Shown: piece after piece, positions 1-58,573 of the stretch
Position numbering within the stretch: position 1 is the first letter of the stretch
Layout: every line of letters begins with the position of its first letter
Sequence record: NC_042100.1
Length of the DNA: 64,000 nt
Strand: one strand, 5' to 3'
Translations under genes and position numbers: made by a program
The notes under the pieces: model-generated
Databases searched by the model: none
Seen by the model: only the letters and a program-made list of their open reading frames with translations
Told to the model about the DNA's origin: nothing

Positions 1-635
1 TAATGAAAGAAATCACCAAGGGTGGTTATAACTATACAGTTTATCGCTCGTTGTTTGATAAACTCACTGATGATCAGTTTGAAGAGTTTATAGTAAAACT
101 GGAAGCGGGTGGCATGCTCTCCATTTGGGTAGATAACCATAACCCTGATGAATACCCGGTGTTTGACAAAATCGTAGAGCTCAGTCAAGCTCGTGGTTTA
201 GAACCAGAACAACATTTGGTGTTCTACGATCAAGATACTGGTCTACGTTATGAAACCCCAGAGACGTTCATAGTGGGGACTGCTGAAACCCGTAAACAAC
301 GCCAGATGTGGGTTAAGAAGTTTGGTGCTGCTAAGGACGACACTAAGATCGACGACTTAACAGGTCAAGTCTTTGGTGATTCTCGTGGTACTGGCATTTC
401 TATTCCAGAGGTTCGTGTGTTGAAGACGCTTGGCTTGGATCTGATCGCCAAAGAACAATACGACGTAAAAGGTGGTGACTTGGGTGCATTGGATGAATAC
501 CGTAAGGGGATCCAAGAGACCGGACACGCAACCGTAGAAGGTTCATTACGACGTGGTACAGGTGTTCGTTCTTTACAAACCGCTGGTCTCTTGATGATGG
601 GTCGACACCTAGAAAACAACCTAGGAGAACGTTAG
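1..635 (+). CDS. Virion RNA polymerase beta subunit, C-terminal fragment (phiKZ gp149-like); probably 5'-truncated by the window edge
   Basis: DDLTGQVFGDSRGTGISIPEVRVLKTLG...EQYDVKGGD aligns by eye with the RpoB C-terminus ([27 protein letters not shown]...EMLTVKSDD). No stop codon is visible upstream of position 3, so the true start may lie before the window. Confidence 0.8.
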   Translation, partial: MKEITKGGYNYTVYRSLFDKLTDDQFEEFIVKLEAGGMLSIWVDNHNPDEYPVFDKIVELSQARGLEPEQHLVFYDQDTGLRYETPETFIVGTAETRKQRQMWVKKFGAAKDDTKIDDLTGQVFGDSRGTGISIPEVRVLKTLGLDLIAKEQYDVKGGDLGALDEYRKGIQETGHATVEGSLRRGTGVRSLQTAGLLMMGRHLENNLGER

Positions 636-14055: not shown

Positions 14056-14077
14056 TTTTGAAACCTCATGGTGTATT

Positions 14078-40484: not shown

Positions 40485-43067
40485 ATGACAGCCAATAACT
40501 ACAGCAGCCCCTTAGCACGTTATGCCATTAAAGAGATGTACTCTAATCCCGGGGTGGCTCGTCAGTTCCAATTACAGCTGACTCAAGTCTCCCCGGACGT
40601 AGGGTATATAGACGTTTTCCAATTCATGGGACGTTACATCAAAACACCGATAGAAAGAGAATATTTTTTAATGTTTAACATGGCGGGCTTTGACGGCTCG
40701 ACATGGAACTTTCAAGATCTACTCACACGAGTGGATCCGGTGAACGAATGGATAAACGTAGCCAAGATCTGTAAAGACCGAGGAATGATCATTGATATCT
40801 ACGGAGACGACGGTCGTTTATATCCTCGAGACAAATGCTGGGTGATGTCCACTTACGATGGTCAACACATCCTCGCTATTCAAAAACTGCAAGCCTTTAA
40901 GTACGGTTGGGAGAATGCCCGCTACTTACATTGTTATACCGTTCAAACAGAACTGTACGACCCGGTGAGTAACCCTGATCAAACAGACTGGCCTCGCTTT
41001 ACTTCAAACAACGGGAATACCGCTGAAGAAAAAGATCGGATGAAGATCATTTACAGTGAGTATAAAAAACTTCCCGGACTCACATCAGTATACCTTAATG
41101 GGTATCTGTGGGATGGGTTTCCTGCCGATAGTTTGTTGTTGGGATTTGAAACCATAGAAATCACTAACGACCCAAGCGTTTGGAAAACCGAGCTGTACGA
41201 GGTAGATAGTTTAAATAACTTCTACTCGGAACGCGACGAAACTCGTAAGCTGATTGTTCATCCTAAAAAGGTGGAAGGGGATTTCTCCTATCGTTATGTG
41301 ACCGATGTTTCTTTTTATTTGGTTGACAAAAATGGGCGCGGTATTTATCTTCACCGGAATCGTGCATCTAACTTCCGACAACTCACTCATTGTGATTATT
41401 CAGTAGACGCGACGTTAGTGGACGACATGGGTAACTTAGAGGATATGTTGAAAAACGAAACTCGTTATCTTCGTCTGGTTTACCGTAAAAACGATTACGC
41501 TCAGGAGATACAGTACGAGTCCAGTGGTGTCCGTTATTTATACCGAATGAACGATGACGGGATCATGGGGGCGTTGATTGGGATCAACTCTACCATGAAA
41601 GAATGGTCAGCTCGTGAATTGGAAAACGCAGAAACGAACTTGTATTTAGATCGTAGCTACGGGGACTTAACACACGAACAGGCAGTGGATGCTGTTGGTT
41701 ACAACCGAGCCACCCAAGTGTTATGCGGGACACCATTCACTTATGACCCGGAATCGGGGATGGAGTTGGACGTCCCTCCAGCGTGTCGCGAACATCTCAC
41801 CATGTTTGAATACGATCAAGATGGGTTGTTCCTGAGAATGCGTAACTTTGAAAAGATCCGTCACGTGCTTCCTACGAATGACGCCCACTTGGTTGAGTTC
41901 TATCCCGGGAAACCGGGGTTACGCGTTCACATGGATATTGGTAGAGACCCAATGGTGGTTGATAAGGAAACCACCCCACGCTTCTATTATCAGAAAGTAA
42001 CAACGGAAGGTAACTTGGTCGGAGAACGTTTCCGTGCTGTTGAAGGTGAGCATTACACGTTTGATCGCATCACTGGTAAGGTGGTTTGGCTATTACCGAG
42101 TTCAATGTTCATTGGGATGATTTTGTATAATGACCAAACGTTATACAAAGAGTTCACTTTGGACCACATTGATAATTCATTGTCTTTCAGTGTGACCGAA
42201 GAATGGGCACAAGGCGGTATGCTGACTGATGTTGCTCCGGCTAACATTATGGTGATCATGAACCGACATTCCTTAATTGAGAACGTCGACTACGTAGTAC
42301 GCTTCCCTCACATTTACATCGTTAACCACCAGTACTTAAAAGCTGATGGTAATGACTTTGTTCTTTATTGCAGTGAGTGGAGTCCGGTGGGTGAAACGGA
42401 ACCATTGGAACAGACTGAACTCGGTTACGTCATGGGTGGTGTGATTGGTCATAACACACGTTACAACTTACGTGAAGACCGTGTTACCCGCACGACCATC
42501 GGTGGTAAGGTTTGGGATCCTAGCAAAGTTCCTGCGGCGGAACATCACGCTCCGAGTGAACTACTTAACCCGTATAACGGTTTACCTTATGGGGTTAAGC
42601 ACTGGTACCTTCCTCTTCGTAATTGGGTTCCTTACGACTTAACAGCAGGATGGGAAGAAGCACGAGACCAAGATAAACGGATGAGTGATTACTTAACGTT
42701 ATTTGCTCGTAAACCTGAACCTCAGGTTATCCCGTCATTGATGGACAAGTACCGAGTATTCAGTCCGTTTATGAATGCAGTGGTCAACCAACTACTTTTA
42801 GGTATTATTCAACTGGATGACCTACCTCCGGGCGAATCTTACTCTGAAGACTATGTATTACGGAAGACGGCAAGTTTCCAATGGTTATTAGAGCACGACC
42901 CTGTAACTCGCGAATACGATCGACGTTACTTTGCGATATTCCCTTACGTTCAACAAACCTTAGTGGCAGTGTCTCCTAAGGAACTCATCTTTATCCAAAG
43001 AGTTAATGAGATTTTCTTACAGAGTCGAGTTAACACGAATGGACACTTCGAGGTTAAACATGTTTGA
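40485..43067 (+). CDS. Baseplate structural protein (phiKZ gp27-like), 860 aa
   Basis: Size and synteny. Confidence 0.65.
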   Translation: MTANNYSSPLARYAIKEMYSNPGVARQFQLQLTQVSPDVGYIDVFQFMGRYIKTPIEREYFLMFNMAGFDGSTWNFQDLLTRVDPVNEWINVAKICKDRGMIIDIYGDDGRLYPRDKCWVMSTYDGQHILAIQKLQAFKYGWENARYLHCYTVQTELYDPVSNPDQTDWPRFTSNNGNTAEEKDRMKIIYSEYKKLPGLTSVYLNGYLWDGFPADSLLLGFETIEITNDPSVWKTELYEVDSLNNFYSERDETRKLIVHPKKVEGDFSYRYVTDVSFYLVDKNGRGIYLHRNRASNFRQLTHCDYSVDATLVDDMGNLEDMLKNETRYLRLVYRKNDYAQEIQYESSGVRYLYRMNDDGIMGALIGINSTMKEWSARELENAETNLYLDRSYGDLTHEQAVDAVGYNRATQVLCGTPFTYDPESGMELDVPPACREHLTMFEYDQDGLFLRMRNFEKIRHVLPTNDAHLVEFYPGKPGLRVHMDIGRDPMVVDKETTPRFYYQKVTTEGNLVGERFRAVEGEHYTFDRITGKVVWLLPSSMFIGMILYNDQTLYKEFTLDHIDNSLSFSVTEEWAQGGMLTDVAPANIMVIMNRHSLIENVDYVVRFPHIYIVNHQYLKADGNDFVLYCSEWSPVGETEPLEQTELGYVMGGVIGHNTRYNLREDRVTRTTIGGKVWDPSKVPAAEHHAPSELLNPYNGLPYGVKHWYLPLRNWVPYDLTAGWEEARDQDKRMSDYLTLFARKPEPQVIPSLMDKYRVFSPFMNAVVNQLLLGIIQLDDLPPGESYSEDYVLRKTASFQWLLEHDPVTREYDRRYFAIFPYVQQTLVAVSPKELIFIQRVNEIFLQSRVNTNGHFEVKHV

Positions 43068-46000
43068 GAAAGATTTAAAAAGTCCGTCTCAGTCAAGCGT
43101 CATTCCGGGGGCTGGTCCACAGCTCCCTAATGAAAATGACCGTGGACGTCTTCACTATATTTGGGATATTTACGATCCTGATACCGTGAGGCCGGGCGAA
43201 GCACATCGTTATGTGGTTCCCCGAGAAAAAGAAATGGTGTTCGATCCTGAGGCTCAACAAATGTACATGGTCACCCATGTTAATTGGGAATCGGATCTAA
43301 AATCAACACTCCAACCTATCTTTAACACTGGGGACGGTGGTAATGACGTTGATGGCATCTTTGGTCTACCTTCTGGGTTCCAAGGTGAAGCCATCGTTGC
43401 GATCGACTACTCCGTCCGTCCTAACCGTGCGGTTATTGATGGTCAAGTCATGGCACCGGGTGCGGCTTACGCACTACTTTACGAAGGTAACACCGTTGGC
43501 GACAAAGGTAAGGTTATCTCGGTAGTCTATTCTAACAACAACCAGTTGGTTTCAGACCGAGTACCCGTCACATTGGCAGCGTATCATGAACTCTCTAATA
43601 AAGAGATTATGATCACACAGCCTTTCTCAGTGAACCGTAACCCGGACGAACTACCTGATGGTTCACGCACTACCCTAGTTTGGTATGATGCTAAAGGTAA
43701 CGTGATTCCTAAAGCACGTACATTGACCGTTCAACACACGTCAATGTTACGTGACCACCAAGTGGGTAAACGTTACATTAAACACGTTGAACTACTTGCT
43801 CCTTGGTTCCTGAACACCAGTGATCCGAAAACATTGAACGTTCCAGTTAACACCATGTTACAGAACCTAGCATTCCGTGCAATGGTTCACTACAGTGATG
43901 GCTCTCGTTCAGATGAATTGGCGATCGATGGTCAGAAAGTACAATTACTGGGCTTGAATGAACACAAGCCATCCACTCCGAGTCAACGTGGGACATTAAC
44001 CCTAGTTTACAACTTGGACCCAGATGAGCACATCTACGAAGCACAGCCGGGTAATCCTAACCAATACCGCAGTTCTTACTGGTTACTGGCAGTACCGTTT
44101 GATGGCGCTTATTCACCTAAGCTTTACTCTTACCCTACTTGGGTAAACGGTCAGTATATCCTGAAACATTTCCTGACCGACTTAGATCGTAAGTTCATGA
44201 TTGATGCCACCGATCACGTTCGTATTAACGAAATGTCACCGGCCTTCCGTCCTACCACTTACGGTGTAGAACAAACACTGGAGTTGAACTGTCGACTCAG
44301 TGATGTGGTTCCGACCTTTAAGCCTATGATCATGCGTCAATCGACCACGTTCGTCCTTAAGGCACCGGGTACAGAAGACGGGAGTAAGTTTGATGTTCGT
44401 TATTCTTACGATCGTTCCTCTTACTCTGACCCAACGTTCAAAGCAATCAACCAAGCGGATAGTCGTCAGGAAATCACCTTTGGTGGCGAGTACGATGACT
44501 TGGAAGATTTCTTAGACCAAGTCTACCGTGCTGTAGAGCCGGGCTTTAATCCACAGCGTGAGAAAGGTCCGATAGAACCAACCCACTTTGAAATCTTAGC
44601 GACGTCTGGTAAGACGTACGAGTACGAAATCAGTCGCTACGCTGAGAAAATGTGGTTGGACGTCCAAGAGCCTCAAGGTCGCACAATCTACGTTCGCTGG
44701 ATACACGAGTCCATTCAAGGTGATCGTTTAATCCTAGCTACCACGGGTGTCTCTATTGACGTCACTGAAGGTCCGGACACTGAAACACCAGTACCAACCA
44801 CTATCGAGTTTGATACCTCGGTACCTAACAGCATCGGCGAACTTCAGATGATCGAGTTCTCTGGTCGTGTTTATGATCAGAAAGGTGCGTTGGTGACCGA
44901 CGGTCTGACTAAGATGTTGGTGAAAGGTGGTGTGCAACACGACACAACGCCTCGTAAGGTCGACATTGGTTTAGATGGTACATTCCGTTTCTTCACATGG
45001 TCAGAACGTGTGAGTGGCGCAACGGAAACGTTTGAGTTTGATTTTGAAGTAGCGGGTGAACTTCCGGATTACTTCTTAACTAAAGACATTCGTATTACGT
45101 CTAACCCGGAACAGCAAATTGGTGAGTTCTTCCCGTATACTCCTACTAAAGTGAGTATCAACAAAGCAGGTCGTGCTTACGGTCAATTGTTGAACAGTGA
45201 AGGTCAACCTCTGCGTGATACCGAGTTCTTCTCTTACATGGATGATGATCTGGATTCTATCCGACGTGAAACGACCGATGAAACAGGTAAGTTCTTACTT
45301 ACTCGTATCCGTAAAGAAGGACAAGATCGCACTACCTTTAAACTGGTTGTGATGGGTAATCGTCATGAACACCTAATCCGTTGGGTAGAAACTGAGCCTT
45401 ACGGTGACCGTATCACCTTAGACGTGGAAGACATGTCTTTTGTTGGCAACGAACCTTTATCTGTAAAAGGTTTGGTCTATGACCAATACGGTGATTTGGT
45501 TGACGGTGTTAAGGTTAACATCGGTTACGGTCCATTATGGCAACCTTACGCGGATGCTAATACTGCTAACGCGGGTAAATACGAACTGACGGGTTCTCCT
45601 AAAGAACCGGGTGATGTATACCAAGTGGTAGTGTGGACTGATAACAGTTTTGCCTTTGGTAACGTTGAGTGGACAGAAGCACCTAAGATCGCTCATGACG
45701 TTGTAATGAGTCCTGATAACGTCCCTGAAGCGCCGGCGGGTACGAGTGTTCGTATCGCAGGTCAATTAGTGGATGAAGAAGGTAACAACTTCACAAGTGA
45801 TAGCCGTACTCCGGTTTACATGAAAGAGCTGAAAGACGCGGACGAGACGATCATCTACGCTGGTTTCGATGGGCGCTTTGAAGCAGAAGTTGGACCTTAC
45901 GGTGACTGGGAAGAAACCACCTTTACGTTCCGTCTGGAAAACGGCAATCAAGGTAGTCACAGCATTCGTTGGATGGGTGAACCACCACGTCTTGCGAAGA

Positions 46001-47826
46001 TTACATTTGACGACGGCTTGCCAGTAACGGGTAAAGTTGGTGAATCCGTAACTCTGAGTGGTAAAACATTCGACCAACATGACGAAGCTTACTTACCGGG
46101 TATTCCATTTGAATTTGAGGTGGAGTTCGCGGGAACCATCGAGAAAGCTCAATCAGACGGCAATGGTAACTGGACTTATGAAGCGGTGGGTATTAAACCG
46201 GGTAGTACGACTTACGGGTTCTCTGCTAACAACCGTGCCGTGGGTTCTTACACCATCAACTTCACTGGTGACGTAACCGTCGCCGCACTCCCATCTGATG
46301 ACACGTTGTTCCGTGTCCCTTACGGTGTTAACCGTACCATCGGTTGGTATGTGCTAGATGAGTCTGGTGCACCAAAAGCAAACGTCACACTGGCTTTACG
46401 TCAAACGGCAACGATCTACTCACCTGATCGCGATCTTGGTAACATCACTACTAACGAACACGGCATTGCTACGTTTGAAGCTCCATACTTAGAAGAGGAG
46501 AAACACGGCACTTACGTTGCTTCTCTAGGTGTGAAAGAAGATACCATCGTTGTGACATGGAGTGATGAGTCAGGCATTAGTGTTACCTTAGATAGTTTTG
46601 TTGTCCCTTCAGTTGTCTATGGTGGAGCATTGAGAGGCAAGGGTCGCATCCTTGATGAGGAAAACAACCCTCTGATAACAGAAGAACCACCCCACTTAGA
46701 CCTCCGACTAGGTGCTTATGATCGAAAAACTTTCGAACCACAACCTATCTGGGTTGATGATCTGGACCCAGAGACTGGGATGTTTGATTTCAGCATTTAT
46801 AGTGAAGACATCGGTATTAAAGATTTGGTGTTCTATAATGAAGTTGATTCAGAACTCCACGTGGTTGAATGGCGTGAACCGGACATTTCCGGAGCATACA
46901 TCGAATGGGAAACAGATATGTTACCTACGGTGTTAGTCACAGGTGACATGTATCCAGTTACGGGTAAGCTTTACCAGTCTAACGGGGAACTTTACACTCC
47001 ACGTGTTCCTGAGGTTCTCTCGGTCAGAACAGACGAGGGTTCAGCGCCTGACGCTGACATCGCTCCTAACGGAATGGTGCGGATGATACTTGGAAGTGAA
47101 ACTCGAGGAGTTCAGAATTACTCGTTGTTCCGAGATCAGGAAGAGATCATCGATGATACCATTGAAATCGAATGGGTGGAAAACGCCTCGGTTGCAGCAG
47201 CACCTTACTCTTACAGTGAAGTGCCTCAAGGTGAGTCTGGTGAAGTTTGGTTTGTTTACAAACAAGACGGAGACCAACCTATCCAGCACCGAGATGTTCT
47301 AATAGGTGTCGGTCAACCGGGTCCAGATAACTTCCCTAGAAAACTAACAACAGACGAATTTGGTATGGTTCACCTGACACTACCGTATAATTCGGAAGTG
47401 AGTCAGGATACTGTTGTCGGGATACTAGGTGAATCTGTTCCTATCGCGATGCACAATGTGGCGTGGGTAGAGGACAGTGTTAAGGTAGGTACCTCTTTCC
47501 GTGATCTATCAATCCCTACTAAAGTGGAGATTGGTGCGGAAGTGGAAGCCGTAGGCGAAGTGTTGGATAAATCTGGTGCACTTACTGACCATAGTGATGT
47601 AGGTATCTACGATAAGACCACTCATACTTTCCACGAAAATGCCGTGAACTCGGATGGCAGCTTTAGTGTTAAACTAGGTCCTTTGGACGAAGGTGACCAT
47701 CATTTAGTAGTTTACACGGGTGCTGAAATTTCAGAGCACGTTGTGCGCTGGGATTCAAGCTTTGTTAATTTTGACTCTGTTGGAATTGACGAAAGCTCAA
47801 ACCGTGTGGCGTTAATCACTAAATAG
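43060..47826 (+). CDS. Baseplate protein (phiKZ gp26-like N-terminal part) fused to about 1000 aa of Ig-like repeats, 1588 aa
   Basis: GAGG RBS supports the start at 43060 (MFEKDL); after about 44790, repeated GxxxDQxG / TDExG / DGxF motifs. Confidence 0.75.
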   Translation: MFEKDLKSPSQSSVIPGAGPQLPNENDRGRLHYIWDIYDPDTVRPGEAHRYVVPREKEMVFDPEAQQMYMVTHVNWESDLKSTLQPIFNTGDGGNDVDGIFGLPSGFQGEAIVAIDYSVRPNRAVIDGQVMAPGAAYALLYEGNTVGDKGKVISVVYSNNNQLVSDRVPVTLAAYHELSNKEIMITQPFSVNRNPDELPDGSRTTLVWYDAKGNVIPKARTLTVQHTSMLRDHQVGKRYIKHVELLAPWFLNTSDPKTLNVPVNTMLQNLAFRAMVHYSDGSRSDELAIDGQKVQLLGLNEHKPSTPSQRGTLTLVYNLDPDEHIYEAQPGNPNQYRSSYWLLAVPFDGAYSPKLYSYPTWVNGQYILKHFLTDLDRKFMIDATDHVRINEMSPAFRPTTYGVEQTLELNCRLSDVVPTFKPMIMRQSTTFVLKAPGTEDGSKFDVRYSYDRSSYSDPTFKAINQADSRQEITFGGEYDDLEDFLDQVYRAVEPGFNPQREKGPIEPTHFEILATSGKTYEYEISRYAEKMWLDVQEPQGRTIYVRWIHESIQGDRLILATTGVSIDVTEGPDTETPVPTTIEFDTSVPNSIGELQMIEFSGRVYDQKGALVTDGLTKMLVKGGVQHDTTPRKVDIGLDGTFRFFTWSERVSGATETFEFDFEVAGELPDYFLTKDIRITSNPEQQIGEFFPYTPTKVSINKAGRAYGQLLNSEGQPLRDTEFFSYMDDDLDSIRRETTDETGKFLLTRIRKEGQDRTTFKLVVMGNRHEHLIRWVETEPYGDRITLDVEDMSFVGNEPLSVKGLVYDQYGDLVDGVKVNIGYGPLWQPYADANTANAGKYELTGSPKEPGDVYQVVVWTDNSFAFGNVEWTEAPKIAHDVVMSPDNVPEAPAGTSVRIAGQLVDEEGNNFTSDSRTPVYMKELKDADETIIYAGFDGRFEAEVGPYGDWEETTFTFRLENGNQGSHSIRWMGEPPRLAKITFDDGLPVTGKVGESVTLSGKTFDQHDEAYLPGIPFEFEVEFAGTIEKAQSDGNGNWTYEAVGIKPGSTTYGFSANNRAVGSYTINFTGDVTVAALPSDDTLFRVPYGVNRTIGWYVLDESGAPKANVTLALRQTATIYSPDRDLGNITTNEHGIATFEAPYLEEEKHGTYVASLGVKEDTIVVTWSDESGISVTLDSFVVPSVVYGGALRGKGRILDEENNPLITEEPPHLDLRLGAYDRKTFEPQPIWVDDLDPETGMFDFSIYSEDIGIKDLVFYNEVDSELHVVEWREPDISGAYIEWETDMLPTVLVTGDMYPVTGKLYQSNGELYTPRVPEVLSVRTDEGSAPDADIAPNGMVRMILGSETRGVQNYSLFRDQEEIIDDTIEIEWVENASVAAAPYSYSEVPQGESGEVWFVYKQDGDQPIQHRDVLIGVGQPGPDNFPRKLTTDEFGMVHLTLPYNSEVSQDTVVGILGESVPIAMHNVAWVEDSVKVGTSFRDLSIPTKVEIGAEVEAVGEVLDKSGALTDHSDVGIYDKTTHTFHENAVNSDGSFSVKLGPLDEGDHHLVVYTGAEISEHVVRWDSSFVNFDSVGIDESSNRVALITK

Positions 47827-47836
47827 GAAATAATAA

Positions 47837-50800
47837 ATGGCAGGTATTATCAGAGGGAACTTACTCGATGCCGAAGGCAACGAAGTAAACCCGGGTAAAC
47901 CCGTCACATTAAAGGCCGTCCGATCGGACGGCCTACCTGATGTGACTATCACGACCAATGATTCTGGTCATTGGTCCTTAGAAGTGAACGCTGAAGTCGA
48001 CTCTCAGGTCGACTTCACTTTTATTTACAATGGAGTAGATGTAGGTGCGCACGCGGTGCGTTTCATTGAAACAGCTGAAGTAGTAACCTTGCCGTATTCT
48101 AATTTCCGCGTTAAAGTGGGTAACACTGGTGTTATTGCATTTGCGGTAAAAGACGACCAAGGTAACGGAGTTCCGTACGCGGATGTCACCATCCACCGTG
48201 ACGACGAAAACTCTGAACCAGTAGCGACAGTTAAAACTGATGGATTTGGTATAGCAACATACACAACTCCTCGTGAAAACTCTCCAGTTAATGTTAACTA
48301 TTTTGCAAAGGCAGGTGGTAATGTTAACAGCAACTACATGCAGTGGGAAGATGGTGAAGAAGAAGGTCGCTTCGGAATCGGTGACTTTAAATACATTGAG
48401 AAAATCAATGCCATCGGACGCGGTAGTGTTTCTGGGACCATCCTAGATGCAGCAGGTGAACCACTGTGGGTTTCCGATATTGATATCTTCAACAAAGACA
48501 CTTTAGAAAGCGTTACTACGCAAGGAGAGTCAATTAACGTAGATGGGTTCTTACATACGTTCGACCCACTACCGGAAGGCAAACACCACTTAGTCGCATA
48601 CACCGAGGGTCAGTTCATTGAGTTTACGGTGGAATCCGGGACCTTCCCTAATCCGGATATCCATAACGTAACTCTCCCAATGGGAAATGCTAAGTTTTAC
48701 CCGGGCGGAAGTTGGTCTAACATCTACGGTCAAGCTTTAGAATCAGACGGTAGTAAATACACTCCGACAGAATTTAGCACCATTGGAATTGAAGACAAAG
48801 ATGGACAAGTAAGAACGGTTTCGATGTATCCTGATGGTTCTTTCATTTTCTCTATTAAGGGGGAAGTGGGCGAGACCGTAACGGAAATAATCAAAAACAC
48901 CGCTGGTGAGGAAGTTGTCACACACCAAGGTGAGTTCATTGCTGCCTCTGAATTAAAGAGTCTCCCTTATTCTGTTACGACGTTGTACACCAACGGCACC
49001 GGTGACGTGGCCTTTGCGTTGCTTGACGCCGAAGGTAAGGGCATCCCTTACGCCCTGATCGTGACTTGGGATCCGAATGGTTACGGACAAGCGGTGACTG
49101 ATGAATTCGGTATTGTAGAAACTTCGGTCTCTAAAGACGGAACCGCGTCCACGGTGAGAACCGGTGTTGAATTCGGAAACAAGTCCGCAGCCCACGAAGT
49201 GTCTTTCAGTGGGTCTTCAGTGGCGAGTGAATTCCGTAACATGACCTTCCCTAGTGTAGGTGATACCGTAAACGCCATGACCATCAGCGGTCGTATTTAC
49301 GATCAAGGTGGTAATGGATTTAAACCGACTCGTTTAGGGGTATTCGACAAGCACACGTTGGGACACACTCCAGTGGACATGTCGTCGGTTAACGGTGACG
49401 GTACTTTCTCTTTTGACTTTGGTCCATTAGAAAAAGGCAAACATAACCTTGTTCTTGGTACCACGGGAGTTACCTTAGAGAAAACGACAGAATGGGCGAT
49501 CGGTTTCCCTCCGGGTTTACGTACTGAACGTTTAAACTATTCTTCTTACCCGAACATTTACATTGGTGATGAAGGGTTGGTTGCATACCGCGCGAGTTTG
49601 ATTGAAGACGCTAAGTTGATCCCTGTGGTCGGTATTCCAGCAAGTTTGTCTGTTCGTGTAAACGGAGAATGGAAAGAACTGGAAACGAAGTTGACCGACG
49701 ATAACGGGATTGTGGAATATTCGTTACCACCGGAAATCGATGGCGTTCAACTAAGCGGTTATCATGAAGTTCGTTGTGTGATGGGACCGAATACGGAATC
49801 GGGCGGTATTACGTGGGTGAACGATCGTGATGTAATCAGTGAGTTTGGTTACTTCGATTACATTAATCCTGTTAACACTGGCGGGCGTTTATCAATTGAG
49901 TTAGAAGCGTTAAACCAAGATGGAACGAAAGTTGACCTCACCGATTGTGGTGTGGTGGTTCTGAATAGTTTCTTCTACGAATCTTACCTTGCTGAAATCA
50001 CTGAGAACGCTAAGGGGACTTACTCGGTTTCTTTCCCTACCATGCCAGACGGAGACCACGATGTGGTGTTCTACAGCGGGAATGCGCAACGCAAGTTGTC
50101 ATTAACTTGGGGCGGTGCTACAGCTAACGAACCTGCGGGTATTCAACTGGACCCGACCTCACCAACATCAGCCGTTGTTGACACCATAGTAACCGTATCT
50201 GGTTCAATCATTGACAGTGAAGGCAACGTTGTTCGTCCTGTGGAAGAAATGGAACTTTCTATCCGTGACGAAAATGCGACGACAGTTAAAGTTAAAGTGG
50301 GTCCATCAGGATCGTTCTCTTTTGAAGCAACGTCCGATACCATTAAGACTAAGACTTACTCCATCTTAGACGACGGCAATAACCTTTACGTTCACCAAGT
50401 GGAGTTTGTCTCCGCACCAGTGATTGAATTCGCCAATTACACTGGTGACAAGGTTGCGAAGACCCATAACGCCACCTTAGCAGTTGTGGTAAAAGATGCT
50501 GACTCTAATGGCATTGAGGGGATGTTGGTTAACTTCACTAACACTTATGATGCGAGTGTGGATTACGGTAAGGTGGTGACAGACGAGTTTGGTGTAGCTG
50601 AACTTGTTTTGAACTACAACCCAGACACCATCACTGCACCAAGTGTTCCGCAAGATGAAGTAACAGCGTTCATTAATGGCACGGACTTAAAAGACAGTCG
50701 CACCATTCGTTGGGCAACAGACACTGAGAACTCAGCAATTGAAATCGCTGACCTAGTGATCAGTCCTCAAACTTACGTTGGCGAACCTATTCAAGTAACC

Positions 50801-53800
50801 GGTAAGTTAGTTGGCAATTTGAACCAAACTAATACCTCTATCATGTGGTTGGTGGTGTTTAACAAATCCACCCTAGGTGGAAAGATGTTCAACGGCAACA
50901 TTCAACCGGACGGTACATTTGACATCAACATCGGTCCTTATGATCTTGGTGCAAACGAATTAGTGTTTGCGACGAACAGTACTGTAATCCCTAGTACGGT
51001 GTTTGTAACCGAAGCACCTATCGTCCTTAAGGGGATGCGAACGCTCCCTTATTCGACCAGTAAGGTTAAACAATCAGGAAGCGCTACGCTTGCGTTTGCC
51101 GGCATTAACTCCGTAGACAAGCCAATGGTGGGTCAATCAATAGAACTACGCTTAGGAAGCGATACAGGGCTATTGCTGGACACTAAAACTACGGATGAGT
51201 TCGGTATCGTTGAGTTTACCGTGAACGATAATCCGGATACCCCTAATTCTGGTGACCTGACTTACTTTGCCGTGAGTGAAGGCATTACAACGAACGCCAT
51301 TGTTGAATGGGGTGTGACAGACCCGGTAGTTGAAGAGCTGCATGGTTTTGAAGCCACTCGTCATGTGGCGGATGGTGAAGAAGGTGTGATCAAACTCAGT
51401 CCTCTTTCACACATGAGTTACACATCTGGTTCAGTCGCAACGGATCCGGGTGGTAACATCACGCCATGGGAAACGAAATCACATGTTGCTGGTGCGGTGA
51501 TTCGCGTGTTTGATAAGCGAACGCTTCAAGAGATTGCTTTAACGGAAATAGACAGTGACCTTGATGTTTATGGTGAACGTTTCAACTTATACCGCATTCC
51601 TACACAAACCCTAGGCGACCATGAATTGGTGGTCTTTGGTGAAAACGCGGTGATGGAAACCACAATGACTTGGGATGCGGATACCGTGCTGGTTAAACCA
51701 ACACGATTCAACATACTCAATAACAGTGGTAATGCGTTTATCCGGTTCAACCTTGATCAGTGGATTGATGGTACAGCCATCGATGGATCAGGTGATACGG
51801 CAGTGCTTACTGGCTATGTGGAAGCACAAATTTCTGACACACAAAACCACCCAGTTTACATCACACCGAAAGGTCGATTTGTTGCTAAATTGGGAGAAGG
51901 TAAGCCAGCCGGTAAACATCCTTACGACTTTAAAGTTGATGGCGTGGTTGTAGACACTCAGGAGATCAACTACTACGATCAACTTAATGTCACACTACTA
52001 CCTTACAGCACACCTAAGCCAGCTAAAGGAAGAAGTGCGACCGTAGGGGTGATTGTTAAAGACGGTGACGGGAACGTAGTTCCTGATGCGTGCCTAACAT
52101 TTACTCCGGGAGCAAGAAACTCTTTCGAGTATAAAGTCAACGTTAAGAGCGACTTTAACGGCATGGCAGAAGTGACTTGGAATCATGACGAAAGTTTCCC
52201 TGAGTTTACGATGTTGAGTGGCTACAACGGTGGGGTGACAGGAGAGTCGCTGTTAATCCGTTGGGTGGAATCACCTGAGCTAACCGGTGATCGTTTTGAA
52301 ACCTTAGTGGTCCCTGAGAAAGTAGTAGGGGATGACAAAGCGGTAATTACTGGTAAGATCTTAGATCAGGACGGCAATCCTTACTCTAACGGTGAACTAG
52401 CGGTCTACAACAAGACGGAGATGACCAACACTGTACTTACGGGTAACATCCAACCGGACGGTACGTTTAGTGTGGAATTAGGTCCTTATCCATTCAAGAC
52501 CTATGAGTTGATCTTTGCTACACTAGGTAACATCGATCGTCAAACGACACGGTGGGGTGGTAGTGGTATCTTAGCAAGTATCGAAATTGATCCTGATAGT
52601 GGCACTCGCGGGCTATTAGGTGACACCGTTGAGATCTTTGGTAGTTCCACGGACACTATCGGCACACCATTCACACCAGATGAAGGGGTTTACACTCTGG
52701 ATGTTGTGAATGATAAAAACGGTGATGTTCTCCCAACGGTTATCGACGCGCAAGGTAACTGGTCCTTCAATGCGACTCATGAAGTAAGTGAAACGGTCAC
52801 ATACACCTTTAAAGATGGTGAGACAGTCTTAGCGACTCATGCGGTTGAGTTCTTTGAAGGTGCGGGTACTTTACGTAACTTCGATGTCCCTAGCACGGTT
52901 AAGGTGGGTCTGAACGAAGACTTCACATTAACGGGTGAAGTGTACAACACCATGAACAAACTTTACCGACCAATCGTTGACGAATTGTTCACACTGGTGC
53001 TGGATGAGACTACTGAGTTCCAAGGCACGATTCATACTGACGGTACATTCAGCGTGAAGCCGACGAATGATAAAGTGGAAACTCAAAGCTTTACCTTTAA
53101 GGTCGGAGAAGACACTTACGACACAGTAGACGTCAAGTGGTGTCAGACGGTAAGTTTAGCGTTTAACGCAGACTCTCAACCTAAGGCTGTTGTCGGTGAT
53201 GATGCTTATGTATCAATCCGAGTGGTGGATGAGAACGGAGAAAGCGTTACCGGGCGTGTAGTGGAGTTCTATGAAGGTGAAGTCACTGGTGAACCTCTAG
53301 ATACTGAGGATGTCTACAGTGAGACCTACATTGGTTACTGGCCTAAAGAAGCCACTGAAGTGGGTGACGTAGTAATCACTGCTAAGTTGGGTGGTATTCA
53401 AGATACCTTGACATTGTCTTGGGTAGGTAGTGATCCTAAGATCGCGGCTGGATTTGGTCGTAAGACCTCAAGAACGGGTTACGTGGTTGACACTAAACCG
53501 GCTTCCGGTACAACAGCAACACTACGAGGCACAGTTGTAGACCAAGACGGCACGCCGTTAGTAGGTCCACAATTCCTTAAAGTGTTCGATCAGGGGTCGT
53601 TTGACTTAACGGATTACTCTGCACAAGTTCAAGCTGATGGTACGTTCGATATCGAGCTCCCAGTGCAACCAGATGGTACTTACAACTACAGTCTTGTTAC
53701 TGAAGGTAACGTGGGTTCCATCAGAGGGATTTCTTGGGATGTTGAAAACGAAGACCTGAAAACGGTTAAGTTGGATGCGAGCGTTCCTACTCAGGTTAAT

Positions 53801-56800
53801 GTTGCTAGCACGCACACGCTTCAAGGTACTATCTTGGATAGCGCTGGTGACACCGTTGCTCCGTCTAAGAGCACTACGGTTTACGTAAACAGCAGTGAGG
53901 GTAACACCTACGAGTTTACAGTCACTCCGGGTGGAACGTGGTCGTTTGCCTACACCTTTAGTAATGCAGGGGATGTGTTGTTTGACTTCCATACTTACCA
54001 AGGTAAGTACTTGGGGTCGGTTACAATCACGGTTGAAGAAGCGGCACCGGTATTCACTTCTATTGAGTGGGTTGGTGAACAACCTACAGAAGGAATGGTT
54101 GGTGAGTCTGTGAAACTAACGGCGGTTACTTTAGACCAATACGGAAATCCGATCGATAGCGTTTCAGTACGTCCATTCATTAATGGTGTACCACAAAACG
54201 CCTTCCGTTCTCCTCCGGGTGGTTCTTGGAGTCTGGATTACACTTCAACCGAAGCAGGTCCAGTGCTTTATGAATTTGGCTGGGAACCGGACGTTGCTCG
54301 TATTGGACACACTGTTGAGTGGAAGCTTCCAGTGGATTCAATCGAAGTCATGCGCTATTCTGACTCTAATGCTGTACCGGGACAAACCGCGTTTGTACCA
54401 TTTGCTGCTCTAGATAGTTCAGGTAAAGGCATTGCAGGTGTTCCTATTGCCCTGCACTTGGATTCGGCTTCGGGTACGTTGTTAACCACTGTAACCACCA
54501 ACGAGTTTGGCATTGCTGAGTTTAACGTTCCTCAGAAAGGAAGTAACGCTAACCGCTTGATCTACGCTAAATACGGTGACATTGTGAAAGAACGTCGCCA
54601 ATGGTGGGCTAACGATCCACTAACACCGGCAACAGGATTTGCTAACTTAACGGTCACCAATCCAGTGCCTGAAGGTGAACGTGCACTAGTTAGTGTTCAA
54701 GCAGTAGCAAGTGATGGCGGTCTTCGCCCACTGTCTACGGTAGGTATCTTTGATCCAGAAACATTAGATCAAGTCTCATTTAACCGCGTAACTACCGGTG
54801 AGTCTAAATCCCACTTGTTGGACTTCGGACACAGTGGAACAGGAACTAAGACTTACATCTTAACTACTGACGCTGGTCACCAAGAGTTCACGGTAACTTG
54901 GGAAAGTAAACCTGTAGTAACACCAAACGACTTAGTATTCGATGCGGATTCTCCGGAATCATTAGTGGTAGGTGAATGGAATACGTTGAGCGGTAAGTTA
55001 GCAGTAGACGGTGTTCCAGTAACTGAATTGGATCACTACGTTAAAGCGACGATGACCGTGGGTGGACAGGAAAGCTACCTAGACTTGGATGTTAGCAAAG
55101 GGACGTTCCGCGTGCTGGTTAAACCAACAGCGGCTGGAACAGAAAACTACGACTTCAAACTTAATGATGTGAGTGTTGTGGTAAAGTCCTTCCGTCACAG
55201 TAACAACGTGACGTTAAACGACGTGAGTGTGTTATCGGTCACTACCCCTCAAATAGGTGACCCTGTGGTACTAAGTACTGTAGTGAAAGATAGCGAAGGG
55301 AACCCTATCCCTAAACTCCCGGTGACGTTTAAACTAGCCGGCGGGAACACACTCGCTACATTAAACACGGATGTCAAAGGAATGGTAACACATTCAGTGC
55401 CTTACCAATCCGGGACAATGTCTTCTGACTTTGAAATTAAAGTGGGAAGTGTCGTAGAAACAGTAACAGCAACTTGGAAACCAACTAATGAACTTATCGA
55501 CGTGGCGTTTGAAGGACTAAGTACCCCAGCGACGGTTTACGATGGTGAATTAGCGAAAGTAACAGGTAAGTTAATCAACCAACAAAACAATGGGACGTCA
55601 ACAACGAAGTTCGAGATCTACCATCGTGGGTTATTAACTCATACCAGTCATGCCGCCGATGTACAACCAGATGGTACGTTCGACTTTAATATTGGTCCGT
55701 TTGCAGTAGGGGTGAATGAATTCTACTTCATCATCAACGGCAAACGCATTGAACGTAGTATCGAGTACATTGAACGCACTGACCCAGAACTGAGTCGTGT
55801 TGAGTTAGATGAGGGTAATCCTACTTCAGGGTTCTCTGGTGAAAACTTAACCATCAGTGGTAAGGGTTATGATCAATACGGTGATCCAATTGCGAACGCT
55901 CAGGTTCAATGGGCAATTTCTGGTGACACACAACCTGCACTAACCACAGGTCCAGATGGTTCATTCAGCACAACGGTTACGCACAACACCAACGCTAGCA
56001 TCACCTACCGATTCGGTGGTAATGACGGCATACCGGTGGCTAACTTGAGTATTGCGTGGACCGTGGCAACGTCAAACACGATGGCGTTTGTTGGTACATC
56101 ACAATGTAAGCAAACTCAAAACAACGAAGCTAACATTGAGTTGTACGTGAAAGACCAAGACGGTGTTGGGGTTCAGGATGCTCAGATCGTAATTAGAGAT
56201 CAGGGCTCAGAAACCCCTATAGCGACACTGACAACTAACGTGCGTGGTTTGGCGTCTTACGCCATCCCTTACGAAGCAGGTAATGATAACCGTACTATCG
56301 AAGCAACTCTGGAACAACTGACAGAGACGTTAGACATTACGTGGTATCCTGCGGTGACTAAGTATGCGACCGGCTTTACTCGTCTGTATATGGATAACCG
56401 CCCTGCTTCAGGAAAATCAACGACGGTACGTGGTCAGCTAGTTGATCAAGAAGGTAATCCAATCACAACGGCTTCAACGTTGGGTATCTTTAACACGATC
56501 ACCTTGGAGAACCATGATTATATCGATCAACTACAACCGGACGGTACGTTTGAGTTTGAGTATGGTCCTGAGGTTGATAGCAACTACCCTATCTCGCTCT
56601 TCACCGATGCCGGTCATTTCGATGAGACGATCATCTGGGATTTGAATAACGCTGACATGAAACGTGTGGTGTTTGACAACAACATTCCTAGAATGACGAA
56701 GAGTAATGGTAGAGTTAGTCTACACGGTACGTTTGTGGACAGTGACGGGAATCCATTCACTCCGTTATCTAACACCGCGTGTACGGCAACTGGAGATAAT

Positions 56801-58426
56801 GGTGATGCCTTTACAGGTACCATTAAAACGGATGGTACGTTCGAAGTTGAAGTATGGTTCCCTGAGTACCGTACCCACAAAGTCGACATATCCGCGCCTG
56901 ATAAGACTTACCTAGGGACTTACTCTCTGGTAGTAACCGCAGATAACATCATTGATGAAATGCCTTACTCAGCTAACGTTGCAACCACGGGTCAGCCGGC
57001 AACAATGGCAGTGAAAGTCGTAAACCAAAGTGATGTTGCGGTGGAGGGTACTGAAGTCACTGCTCACTTGGGCGATCCAAGTAATCCGGCGGTGGTGACA
57101 GCGAACACGGACGCCAGAGGCATTGCAACCATGAATGTTCCTGCTCCAGCGGAAACAGGCAAAACAACGGTCTACTTTAAGAACAGTACTTCAGTGCTTG
57201 ACGCAGAGGTGGATTGGAAGCCTGTGGACGATCTGGTTGGTAAAACATTCCAAGATGTCGTAACGTCGTCTCCGGCTGAATACGGTCAACCAGCTACAAT
57301 CAGTGGTAAGCTGTTGGATCAGAACGGGGATGTGTTACCGGGTCGTAACCTTGGTGTTTACCACTTGAATGGAGGTACGTTGTTAGACACTACTGTAGTG
57401 AAGAACGATGGAACAGGGTTTACTCTGGAAGTTGGTCCTTTAACTACAGGAACTCATCAGCTAGTGTTGTTCACGGGTAATGCTGAACGTTATGAAGAAA
57501 TTACATGGAACGTGGAAATCCCTCCTATTGGGAAACTAGAAACGGTCTCGTTCTCTTCAACTAAGGCTCCAAGTGGTCAACCTGCTAAAGTTCACTTCTA
57601 CGTCCTTGCACCTAACTACGGTCGCGTCAAAGACGTTCCAGTAACCGCACGTTGGGGTAATGCTCAAGGTGAAGTTATTGCAACAGAAATGACGAACTCT
57701 GAAGGCTTGGTAAGTTACACCTTACCGGGAACGGACGAGTCTGGTGATCGACTAGGTGTGCATACGGTTTACGTTGAAGTTGGTGGTAAGTCCATCACAG
57801 ATACCGTGGAGTGGGTAGACGACGAGTTGATTGGTCAGTCTATCATTGAGATCGACAACATGCAGAACATCGAATACGGGGAGAAATTCCTAGTTCGCAT
57901 GACGGTCAGAGATCAAAATAACGAACCTATCCGTAACCCGGATTACAGTTTGTTCCAGCCTAAGTCTCGTCAAGAGGTTATTAATCTGGTTCGGATCGAC
58001 TACCCGGGCGATGATGTGGTGTTCCAAGCAACCGCACAATCAAGTTCAGTAACGGAGTTGTATGTCGGTACTGACAATGACTATCGTGTTATCCCGGTTA
58101 ACTGGGATTACGCTAACGACATCATTAAACCAGTAACCGCGGCGATCGACGTTGACGTTCCTGAATATCATCCTGTGGGCGTTGACTCAATAGTGAAAGG
58201 TAAAGTACTCGACACCAATGGTTTAGAGTTCCGACCAACTACTATTCTGAAGCTGAAAGCACGTCGTGTTAGCGATAATTCAGAAACTGAGTTGACGGTC
58301 ATGCCAGATGGTGAATGGGCGTTTGTTGTGAACGAACCTACTGAGTCTGAAGTAGTGTACAAGTTAATGTACGGCAACGTAGAATTAATGGAATACACGG
58401 CTAAGTTCGGTGCTCCTGCAAGCTAA
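47837..58426 (+). CDS. Giant Ig-like (invasin/Big_1-type) repeat protein, putative tail fibre/adhesin, 3529 aa
   Basis: About 11 TDEFG-like motifs and recurring LPYS, GxxxDQxG, QPDGTF and terminal Trp motifs; acidic, beta-rich composition. Confidence 0.8.
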   Translation: MAGIIRGNLLDAEGNEVNPGKPVTLKAVRSDGLPDVTITTNDSGHWSLEVNAEVDSQVDFTFIYNGVDVGAHAVRFIETAEVVTLPYSNFRVKVGNTGVIAFAVKDDQGNGVPYADVTIHRDDENSEPVATVKTDGFGIATYTTPRENSPVNVNYFAKAGGNVNSNYMQWEDGEEEGRFGIGDFKYIEKINAIGRGSVSGTILDAAGEPLWVSDIDIFNKDTLESVTTQGESINVDGFLHTFDPLPEGKHHLVAYTEGQFIEFTVESGTFPNPDIHNVTLPMGNAKFYPGGSWSNIYGQALESDGSKYTPTEFSTIGIEDKDGQVRTVSMYPDGSFIFSIKGEVGETVTEIIKNTAGEEVVTHQGEFIAASELKSLPYSVTTLYTNGTGDVAFALLDAEGKGIPYALIVTWDPNGYGQAVTDEFGIVETSVSKDGTASTVRTGVEFGNKSAAHEVSFSGSSVASEFRNMTFPSVGDTVNAMTISGRIYDQGGNGFKPTRLGVFDKHTLGHTPVDMSSVNGDGTFSFDFGPLEKGKHNLVLGTTGVTLEKTTEWAIGFPPGLRTERLNYSSYPNIYIGDEGLVAYRASLIEDAKLIPVVGIPASLSVRVNGEWKELETKLTDDNGIVEYSLPPEIDGVQLSGYHEVRCVMGPNTESGGITWVNDRDVISEFGYFDYINPVNTGGRLSIELEALNQDGTKVDLTDCGVVVLNSFFYESYLAEITENAKGTYSVSFPTMPDGDHDVVFYSGNAQRKLSLTWGGATANEPAGIQLDPTSPTSAVVDTIVTVSGSIIDSEGNVVRPVEEMELSIRDENATTVKVKVGPSGSFSFEATSDTIKTKTYSILDDGNNLYVHQVEFVSAPVIEFANYTGDKVAKTHNATLAVVVKDADSNGIEGMLVNFTNTYDASVDYGKVVTDEFGVAELVLNYNPDTITAPSVPQDEVTAFINGTDLKDSRTIRWATDTENSAIEIADLVISPQTYVGEPIQVTGKLVGNLNQTNTSIMWLVVFNKSTLGGKMFNGNIQPDGTFDINIGPYDLGANELVFATNSTVIPSTVFVTEAPIVLKGMRTLPYSTSKVKQSGSATLAFAGINSVDKPMVGQSIELRLGSDTGLLLDTKTTDEFGIVEFTVNDNPDTPNSGDLTYFAVSEGITTNAIVEWGVTDPVVEELHGFEATRHVADGEEGVIKLSPLSHMSYTSGSVATDPGGNITPWETKSHVAGAVIRVFDKRTLQEIALTEIDSDLDVYGERFNLYRIPTQTLGDHELVVFGENAVMETTMTWDADTVLVKPTRFNILNNSGNAFIRFNLDQWIDGTAIDGSGDTAVLTGYVEAQISDTQNHPVYITPKGRFVAKLGEGKPAGKHPYDFKVDGVVVDTQEINYYDQLNVTLLPYSTPKPAKGRSATVGVIVKDGDGNVVPDACLTFTPGARNSFEYKVNVKSDFNGMAEVTWNHDESFPEFTMLSGYNGGVTGESLLIRWVESPELTGDRFETLVVPEKVVGDDKAVITGKILDQDGNPYSNGELAVYNKTEMTNTVLTGNIQPDGTFSVELGPYPFKTYELIFATLGNIDRQTTRWGGSGILASIEIDPDSGTRGLLGDTVEIFGSSTDTIGTPFTPDEGVYTLDVVNDKNGDVLPTVIDAQGNWSFNATHEVSETVTYTFKDGETVLATHAVEFFEGAGTLRNFDVPSTVKVGLNEDFTLTGEVYNTMNKLYRPIVDELFTLVLDETTEFQGTIHTDGTFSVKPTNDKVETQSFTFKVGEDTYDTVDVKWCQTVSLAFNADSQPKAVVGDDAYVSIRVVDENGESVTGRVVEFYEGEVTGEPLDTEDVYSETYIGYWPKEATEVGDVVITAKLGGIQDTLTLSWVGSDPKIAAGFGRKTSRTGYVVDTKPASGTTATLRGTVVDQDGTPLVGPQFLKVFDQGSFDLTDYSAQVQADGTFDIELPVQPDGTYNYSLVTEGNVGSIRGISWDVENEDLKTVKLDASVPTQVNVASTHTLQGTILDSAGDTVAPSKSTTVYVNSSEGNTYEFTVTPGGTWSFAYTFSNAGDVLFDFHTYQGKYLGSVTITVEEAAPVFTSIEWVGEQPTEGMVGESVKLTAVTLDQYGNPIDSVSVRPFINGVPQNAFRSPPGGSWSLDYTSTEAGPVLYEFGWEPDVARIGHTVEWKLPVDSIEVMRYSDSNAVPGQTAFVPFAALDSSGKGIAGVPIALHLDSASGTLLTTVTTNEFGIAEFNVPQKGSNANRLIYAKYGDIVKERRQWWANDPLTPATGFANLTVTNPVPEGERALVSVQAVASDGGLRPLSTVGIFDPETLDQVSFNRVTTGESKSHLLDFGHSGTGTKTYILTTDAGHQEFTVTWESKPVVTPNDLVFDADSPESLVVGEWNTLSGKLAVDGVPVTELDHYVKATMTVGGQESYLDLDVSKGTFRVLVKPTAAGTENYDFKLNDVSVVVKSFRHSNNVTLNDVSVLSVTTPQIGDPVVLSTVVKDSEGNPIPKLPVTFKLAGGNTLATLNTDVKGMVTHSVPYQSGTMSSDFEIKVGSVVETVTATWKPTNELIDVAFEGLSTPATVYDGELAKVTGKLINQQNNGTSTTKFEIYHRGLLTHTSHAADVQPDGTFDFNIGPFAVGVNEFYFIINGKRIERSIEYIERTDPELSRVELDEGNPTSGFSGENLTISGKGYDQYGDPIANAQVQWAISGDTQPALTTGPDGSFSTTVTHNTNASITYRFGGNDGIPVANLSIAWTVATSNTMAFVGTSQCKQTQNNEANIELYVKDQDGVGVQDAQIVIRDQGSETPIATLTTNVRGLASYAIPYEAGNDNRTIEATLEQLTETLDITWYPAVTKYATGFTRLYMDNRPASGKSTTVRGQLVDQEGNPITTASTLGIFNTITLENHDYIDQLQPDGTFEFEYGPEVDSNYPISLFTDAGHFDETIIWDLNNADMKRVVFDNNIPRMTKSNGRVSLHGTFVDSDGNPFTPLSNTACTATGDNGDAFTGTIKTDGTFEVEVWFPEYRTHKVDISAPDKTYLGTYSLVVTADNIIDEMPYSANVATTGQPATMAVKVVNQSDVAVEGTEVTAHLGDPSNPAVVTANTDARGIATMNVPAPAETGKTTVYFKNSTSVLDAEVDWKPVDDLVGKTFQDVVTSSPAEYGQPATISGKLLDQNGDVLPGRNLGVYHLNGGTLLDTTVVKNDGTGFTLEVGPLTTGTHQLVLFTGNAERYEEITWNVEIPPIGKLETVSFSSTKAPSGQPAKVHFYVLAPNYGRVKDVPVTARWGNAQGEVIATEMTNSEGLVSYTLPGTDESGDRLGVHTVYVEVGGKSITDTVEWVDDELIGQSIIEIDNMQNIEYGEKFLVRMTVRDQNNEPIRNPDYSLFQPKSRQEVINLVRIDYPGDDVVFQATAQSSSVTELYVGTDNDYRVIPVNWDYANDIIKPVTAAIDVDVPEYHPVGVDSIVKGKVLDTNGLEFRPTTILKLKARRVSDNSETELTVMPDGEWAFVVNEPTESEVVYKLMYGNVELMEYTAKFGAPAS

Positions 58427-58435
58427 TGTAAAGTA

Positions 58436-58468
58436 ATAACTCAGGTGGGTTAGACCCACCTGAGTTAT
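58436..58468 (+). terminator. Intrinsic terminator
   Basis: Perfect 15-bp stem ATAACTCAGGTGGGT-TAG-ACCCACCTGAGTTAT followed by CTTTATTTT. Confidence 0.85.
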
Positions 58469-58573
58469 CTTTATTTTCCACTTATTTAAACCCCACTGAG
58501 AATTTATTGAACGAAACGCGTAACTGGGTTCTCCCTTGGCCCGGTATGTATAACAAGCAAAAGGAAGATACTA

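Follow-up and report, generated by a model that had tools for sequence, protein, structure and literature searches.

The window analysed here comprises 64,000 nucleotides (nt) of record NC_042100.1 and corresponds, with a 100% match and identical coordinates, to bases 1-64000 of Aphrodite1 (MG720308 / NC_042100), a jumbo Vibrio phage of the genus Aphroditevirus in the subfamily Gorgonvirinae of the Chimalliviridae. We are concerned with the boundary between two adjacent genes, which like all features below lie on the plus strand unless stated otherwise. The first, gp040 (43060-47826, 1588 amino acids (aa)), is annotated as “virion structural protein”; its open reading frame (ORF), its annotation and segmentation with a repeat hidden Markov model (HMM) divide it into an N-terminal module resembling gp26 of phage phiKZ, about ten immunoglobulin (Ig)-like repeats and a tail of 24 aa. 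The second, gp041 (47837-58426, 3529 aa), is annotated as “putative invasin” and encodes a giant fibre of about 35 Ig-like repeats. An earlier, sequence-only reading had proposed that one Ig-like domain is split in register across this boundary, its first strand or strands coming from the end of gp040 and the remainder from the start of gp041, and that the fibre is thereby clipped onto a baseplate-anchored stalk.

The N-terminal module of gp040 (aa 1-577, 43060-44790) belongs to the phiKZ gp26 family, as indicated by near-full-length homology and by synteny. Residues 52-564 match phiKZ gp26 in BLASTP (27% identity over 528 of 552 aa, E 3e-47), and the module matches phrog_3430 (E 2.7e-143) and is present in 290 phage records. 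The preceding gene, gp039 (40485-43067), is a full-length match to Pfam DUF7193 (1037.6 bits) and a homologue of phiKZ gp27, and gp038 matches the phiKZ gp28 family (PF25614). The order gp28-gp27-gp26 is as in phiKZ, beside sheath and tube genes, and the neighbours examined code for baseplate, sheath, tube and fibre proteins. In the outer peripheral baseplate of phiKZ, gp27 is the scaffold and gp26 a cross-linker, with five gp26 copies per star lobe and gp26 C-termini that insert into neighbouring proteins (PMC13250141). The gp26 homology thus supports the baseplate-anchored stalk of the sequence-only reading, which appears plausible from this match and from the gp27- and gp28-like neighbours. 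gp040 is an outer-baseplate protein of the phiKZ gp26 type to which about ten Ig-like repeats and, at the end, a conserved 24-residue tail are added. Placement of these proteins on the capsid, which the “vertex-binding” Pfam name of gp038 might suggest, was dropped, as gp27 and gp26 are baseplate proteins in the phiKZ atlas. The mechanically called ORF of gp040 begins at 43006 (1606 aa); the annotated start at 43060 overlaps the end of gp039 by 8 nt, and does so likewise in all relatives.

The repeat HMM was built from the window's own proteins and has 99 positions, running from one conserved Trp to the next. It gives ten matches in gp040 (aa 575-1564, 44782-47751, E 1e-11 to 1e-22), 34 in gp041 and 15 in the in-window part of gp042 (2548 aa, 58574-64000), a second giant fibre recognised by translation, HMM and annotation that extends past the window end. 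Pfam Big_1 matches gp041 with 106.3 bits against a cut-off of 34.9 (E 9e-31); gp040 alone scores 23.4 bits, under the cut-off. Structures were predicted with AlphaFold2 (AF2) for separate single chains, from input alignments that contained only repeats from this window, and strands were assigned with DSSP. The models of gp041 residues 1-170 and gp040 residues 1371-1588 have a mean predicted local distance difference test score (pLDDT) of 94.5 and 90.7, respectively. Their tandem beta-sandwich fold, together with the Big_1 score of gp041, places them in the Ig-like arrays, and Foldseek sets both among tandem Ig-like domains (invasin 1cwv, InvE 5n40, intimin 6tpl and FdeC 4e9l, E ~1e-5 to 1e-4), with complement MG domains also among the matches.

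The last residue of the gp040 array is a conserved Trp, W1564 counted from the annotated start at 43060, with its codon at 47749-47751. It is followed by the 24 residues of the tail (aa 1565-1588, 47752-47823), a TAG stop (47824-47826), a spacer of 10 nt (47827-47836) and the gp041 ATG at 47837, in the +1 frame relative to gp040. Within this stop-to-spacer segment (47824-47836), a Shine-Dalgarno-like AGGAA (47825-47829) overlaps the gp040 stop, 7 nt upstream of the ATG. The positions and letters reported earlier for the Trp, the 24-residue end, the 10-nt gap, the change of frame and the AGGA are all correct. Two TAA codons stand immediately 5' of the ATG in the gp041 frame and the third frame is closed as well, so that a single indel or a slip of +1 or -1 cannot fuse the two ORFs. 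Both genes, gp040 and gp041, are real and are translated separately. At the junction, neither a terminator-like site nor, on this strand, a promoter-like one was found. The ribosome-binding site overlapping the stop, with the 10-nt spacer, would couple translation of the two genes, in which case the new gp041 N-terminus would emerge beside the finished C-terminus of gp040.

The anatomy of the two ends is complementary in length. The first domain of gp041, hereafter the head (aa 1-76, 47837-48064), matches repeat-HMM positions 27-99 with residues 3-76, and so is without the first ~26 positions of the repeat; against Big_1 it covers profile positions 24-93 of 93. Searching solved structures by sequence with a profile of the head gave weak matches only, to an RTX-adhesin repeat and a SusC N-terminal domain. 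AF2 predicts six strands in the head (2-8, 24-29, 36-39, 45-51, 56-64 and 67-76), the first of which is the strand that comes third (B) in intact repeats; the second, intact domain of gp041 has in addition a short strand A (81-84) and a bridge ahead of strand B. The intact junction of the last two gp040 repeats has its strands at W+9..14 (A), W+18..20 (A') and W+25..32 (B), with a pLDDT of 92-98. In the gp040 tail, strands are predicted at W+9..13 (aa 1573-1577, 47776-47790; residues 203-207 of the model) and W+18..22 (aa 1582-1586, 47803-47817; model residues 212-216), the offsets of A and A', with a turn of four residues between them. The distance from Trp to the Gly anchor, summed over tail and head, is 30 without the initiator Met and 31 with it; among the 19 intact repeats that carry the Gly anchor it ranges from 28 to 36, is most often 30 (9 of 19) and lies within 29-31 in 14. 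The count of 17 from Asp to Gly given in the sequence-only reading, the same as in the gp041 repeat at 772-789, is correct if the initiator Met is left out. The gp040/gp041 boundary therefore separates A' from B within one repeat unit, and the two pieces together have the length of a normal unit.

The same boundary is found in relatives. Four other distinct Aphroditevirus genomes (USC-1, PDCC-1, 2 TSL-2019 and phiKT1019), with 72-86% DNA identity in this region, have the same stop and the same 10-nt spacer as Aphrodite1. Across the five, 11 of the 13 bases from stop to ATG are invariant, as are the last nine residues of the tail and the first five of the head. Two metagenomic relatives, ~50% identical in the head, share the 10-nt junction with its AGGA(A), and the head start MAGII-(K/R)-G is kept in all seven; at the end of the metagenomic tails 4 of the 16 hairpin residues differ, 2 of them within the last 9. 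Fused relatives were sought in several ways. An exhaustive phmmer search of 1.84 billion representative proteins found none, and with the head as query gave 18 matches, all 10 of those to the whole head beginning at residue 1-4 of their protein. IMG/VR returned only phages already known, a scan of metagenome contigs found no fused form, and a word-indexed protein search added the two metagenomic relatives, which are split likewise. The comparison of related genomes thus supports a boundary that is real and old, and gives no sign of the single fused ORF that would point to an assembly error.

The tail is also under purifying selection. Across the five Aphroditevirus genomes the last 16 tail codons have 10 variable columns, of which nine are synonymous and one is residue-changing, compared with 35 residue-changing columns among 71 variable codon columns in the preceding repeat (Fisher p = 0.037). 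The identity of the 16-residue hairpin to Aphrodite1 across clades is 94, 62, 50, 50 and 31%, and that of the preceding repeat, in the same order, 74, 39, 30, 31 and 32%. These substitution patterns indicate stronger purifying selection on the tail than on the repeat before it, and support the view that tail and head are both conserved beyond their surroundings.

The head is not particular to gp041. The gp042 head (aa 1-75, 58574-58798; HMM positions 26-99) is, by alignment, a paralogue of the gp041 head, with 8 of the first ten residues identical and 39% identity over the whole domain. gp042 carries the 75-aa head at its very N-terminus, and so do as many as five giant fibre genes in a row in the genus Tidunavirus, with four head-bearing fibres in pTD1 and five in phiKT1028. 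The giant fibres are a family with one common anchor module, always N-terminal in relatives, and variable Ig arrays. The tail motif is found once per genome, a search for a second copy finding none at E <= 10 (a short query of low sensitivity). gp041 ends 5 residues past its last strand and is separated from gp042 by 147 nt that contain a terminator-like hairpin and T-run, read directly from the sequence (58438-58477), followed by ~95 nt and a ribosome-binding site of its own for gp042; unlike gp040 and gp041, these two genes form separate, uncoupled units.

These observations can be combined into a model in which a multi-copy stalk of the gp26 type carries the gp040 tail as a candidate C-terminal docking hairpin, to which one fibre head or several would attach by beta-strand addition. 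The two short strands of the tail would lie against exposed edges of the fibre head, completing an Ig-like sandwich and so fastening the fibre to the stalk end; a single long Ig array probably underwent fission to give this arrangement. We prefer docking of this kind to the other explanations considered here, and regard it as plausible but unproven, falling somewhat short of probable. As gp042 and up to five fibres in relatives share a head with the same start and the tail motif occurs once per genome, a common socket-filling peptide is likelier than a private half of one split domain. A more specific form, in which the two-gene Ig split is a plug-and-socket joint and the stalk hairpin can complete the first domain of more than one kind of paralogous giant fibre, is rather unlikely; the stalk would be present in ~30 copies if phiKZ stoichiometry holds.

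Several observations weigh against strand complementation. The two tail strands are predicted with a pLDDT of only 60-66, in output without coordinates from which their pairing partner cannot be read, and the gp041 head is modelled with a pLDDT of 92-97 alone, without added strands. The sequence-only reading had itself named stable folding of the N-terminal domain on its own as something that would speak against it, and the confident single-chain prediction weakens it in this respect. Against CarboxypepD_reg the head covers positions 2-46 of 82, i.e. it is complete from its N-terminus, so to judge from the profiles its “truncated” status depends on the reference family chosen. Tail residues do not resemble a repeat start: the tail scores -0.3 bits against the 99-position repeat HMM and lies inside the shuffle distribution of an anchored BLOSUM62 test (z -0.15 to 1.1). 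Genuine repeat starts compared with one another do no better in the latter (leave-one-out mean -17.8, equal to shuffles), and the residue-similarity test is therefore without power in this region; the gap-free alignment on which the earlier reading leaned is informative only in its length (30 or 31 against a mode of 30). Paralogous fibres, gp042 among them, share the start residue of gp041 with a tail-less gene 119-162 nt before them, and most of the head-bearing fibres of pTD1 and phiKT1028 follow proteins that end at the last strand and carry no donor tail. In the Tidunavirus genomes VP4B, pTD1 and phiKT1028 the core motif of the tail is internal, with 34-40 residues still to follow, and the spacer of 125-129 nt contains a GC hairpin and an AT-rich stretch; the pieces there are not additive to one domain. 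Finally, our comparisons span only three clades of one subfamily, so that co-occurrence of tail and head is confounded with synteny. What stands of a domain split in register is thus the anatomy, the spacing, the 10-nt junction and the conservation, and the assignment of first strands to gp040 and later ones to gp041 agrees with a head predicted without A and A' and tail strands predicted at those offsets; the chance level of residue similarity, the head modelled alone, the paralogous heads that start alike without a tail and the Tidunavirus pieces speak against it.

Much of this evidence would be expected if the boundary were an ordinary one placed at a linker. On that explanation the head is a complete, six-stranded anchor domain that binds another site of the baseplate, the tail is an independent hairpin that caps the last repeat of gp040 itself or docks into another baseplate protein, and the in-register lengths are a coincidence or the trace of an old fission. 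The confident model of the isolated head and its completeness by the CarboxypepD_reg profile fit this explanation, as do the start residue shared by all paralogous heads with or without an upstream tail, the internal motif and uncoupled genes of Tidunavirus, and the chance similarity of the tail to repeat starts. It has a precedent in phiKZ, where the gp26 C-terminus docks into gp157, gp130 and gp139 (PMC13250141). It leaves unaccounted for the position of the tail strands at the offsets of A and A', the 10-nt coupled junction kept in two clades ~50% identical in the head, and the fact that the first head strand is the most conserved part between paralogues. We consider an ordinary boundary the main alternative to docking, a distinct possibility though a doubtful one; if it were true, this would be a conserved gene boundary in a linker and nothing out of the ordinary.

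Two further explanations share the in-register lengths as their starting point. A small insertion carrying stop, Shine-Dalgarno sequence and start may have cut a long Ig array and left a neutral relic, with a functionless tail and two proteins that do not touch through it. That the pieces sum to one repeat unit, and that other tails in relatives also stop within a repeat start, would both follow from such an event. The purifying selection on the tail (nine of ten variable columns synonymous, as compared above with the neighbouring repeat) and the survival of its core motif between clades ~30% identical nearby are hard to reconcile with a lack of function, and make a neutral relic improbable. 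For the two ORFs being in reality one protein, through sequencing or assembly error, frameshift, readthrough or a ribosome hop, only the in-register lengths can be cited, and we deem it extremely unlikely. Assembly error and frameshift were ruled out by the identical junction in independently sequenced genomes and in metagenomes and by the stops that close all three frames, two of them, the TAA codons, directly before the ATG in the gp041 frame. Programmed frameshifting was ruled out because the +1 and -1 frames both meet stops, and hopping because no matching pair of take-off and landing codons lands in frame; no relative is fused.

Other junctions are also seen in relatives. Behind the tail motif of Tidunavirus come a short linker and then 28-38 residues that resemble a repeat start, and fibre protein B of VP4B and pTD1 also ends in a partial repeat start. 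The C-termini of fibre proteins A and B in these two phages are the same kind of orphan partial repeat start (A, A', B), ending in Gly-Asp-(Val/Ala)-Ser or Gly-Asn-Ala-Ser and then the stop in three of four; A of pTD1 ends differently. The C-type heads of VP4B and pTD1 have a 12-residue deletion after the first strand. These C-termini and the C-type heads may represent a second donor/acceptor pair. In the metagenomic relatives the next junction, from fibre B to fibre C, has a 16-nt spacer (L022/L023, 19139-19156 and 21413-21430). Fibre B there ends 24 residues past its last Trp, with an A-like strand, and fibre C starts 17 residues ahead of the Gly anchor, so the two pieces overlap and are not additive. 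The head of this fibre C is of a different kind and begins with an A'-like segment.

If the tail does complete the head, it has several analogues among known systems. The sequence-only reading had likened the joint to donor-strand exchange in chaperone-usher pili, in which an incomplete Ig-like fold is likewise completed by a strand of another polypeptide. Chaperone-usher pilins are without their C-terminal G strand, the donor is an N-terminal extension, and a periplasmic chaperone and an usher are required. The gp041 head keeps its last strand (67-76) and is without the N-terminal A and A', and the candidate donor is a C-terminal tail; the polarity of that analogy is therefore wrong. In type V pili of Bacteroidia (FimA/Mfa1-type), by comparison, the Ig-like (transthyretin-like) domain of a subunit has a groove where its N-terminal strand is missing, and this is filled by the C-terminal strand or strands of the neighbouring subunit. 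The subunits are polymerising lipoproteins in which proteolysis removes the N-terminal strand and so opens the groove. The polarity is the same as in the proposed joint, with a C-terminal donor and N-terminal strands missing in the acceptor, and by this measure type V strand exchange, and not chaperone-usher exchange, would be the closest mechanistic analogue. It differs in that the acceptor is here made without the strands, the acceptor ORF beginning at strand B in every relative so that there is no N-terminal strand to remove, and in that the joint is between two different proteins.

The engineered SpyTag/SpyCatcher pair, a split CnaB domain, is similar in that a short peptide and a truncated Ig-like domain re-form one domain; such pairs are laboratory splits locked by an isopeptide bond. 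Pfam gives no Cna_B match in gp040 or gp041, the tail ends in Lys, Glu or Asn depending on the clade, and the fibre heads compared have no invariant Lys. If the tag and catcher suggested earlier were meant to be covalent, these comparisons lend that idea no support; the tail does carry an invariant Ser-Asn. Within the same virus family, DUF7941 proteins (Goslar gp22/gp23, phiKZ gp126-gp127) have been proposed to form head-to-tail filaments through an intermolecular beta-sheet, also at the peripheral baseplate (PMC13742148). Those filaments are homo- or hetero-oligomers of small protomers, whereas here there would be a single joint from a stalk to giant Ig-repeat fibres, and there is no DUF7941 Pfam match in gp040 or gp041 at E <= 0.01. 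The phiKZ baseplate itself shares the gene order, the homologous gp040 module and gp039, and the use of gp26 C-termini as docking elements. However, phiKZ gp26 has 552 aa and no Ig array, and the phiKZ fibres (gp131 paralogues) attach by helical bundles (PMC13250141); an Ig stalk, the tail and giant Ig fibres are peculiar to Gorgonvirinae. A search of the open-access literature for donor-strand or strand complementation in phage fibres found nothing relevant.

The outer baseplate and its fibres are the least resolved part of the chimallivirus virion, and are largely unmodelled in the recent phiKZ (PMC13250141) and Goslar atlases. The candidate joint would pair a stalk of the gp26 type, through its 24-residue tail, with the six-stranded head that all giant fibres have in common, and would show where to look in virion maps of Gorgonvirinae. 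It would also account for the mounting of proteins 1,600 to 3,900 residues long on the virion and, if confirmed, represent a naturally occurring Ig pair with strand complementation outside pili. If the plug-and-socket form were true, one phage would display mixed Ig fibres on the 100-nm scale on one kind of anchor, and fibres would be exchangeable in evolution as cassettes behind a constant head.

Some features of the region are recorded in their own right. The coding region of the gp041 head contains, at 47992-48027 (~aa 52-64), a terminator-like element in which a perfect inverted repeat of 11 bp encloses a 4-nt loop and has a T-rich run behind it. Two more very large ORFs are present in the window, one on the minus strand (7000-14115, 2371 aa) and one on the plus strand (15688-20037, 1449 aa). 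Just beyond the window, gp043 (Aphrodite1 66309-69524, L020 8310-11525) is annotated as “DarB-like antirestriction”, in conflict with the annotation of its close homologue pTD1 gp156 as “terminase large subunit”. The position of gp043 is that of phiKZ gp25, the terminase large subunit, which adjoins gp26.

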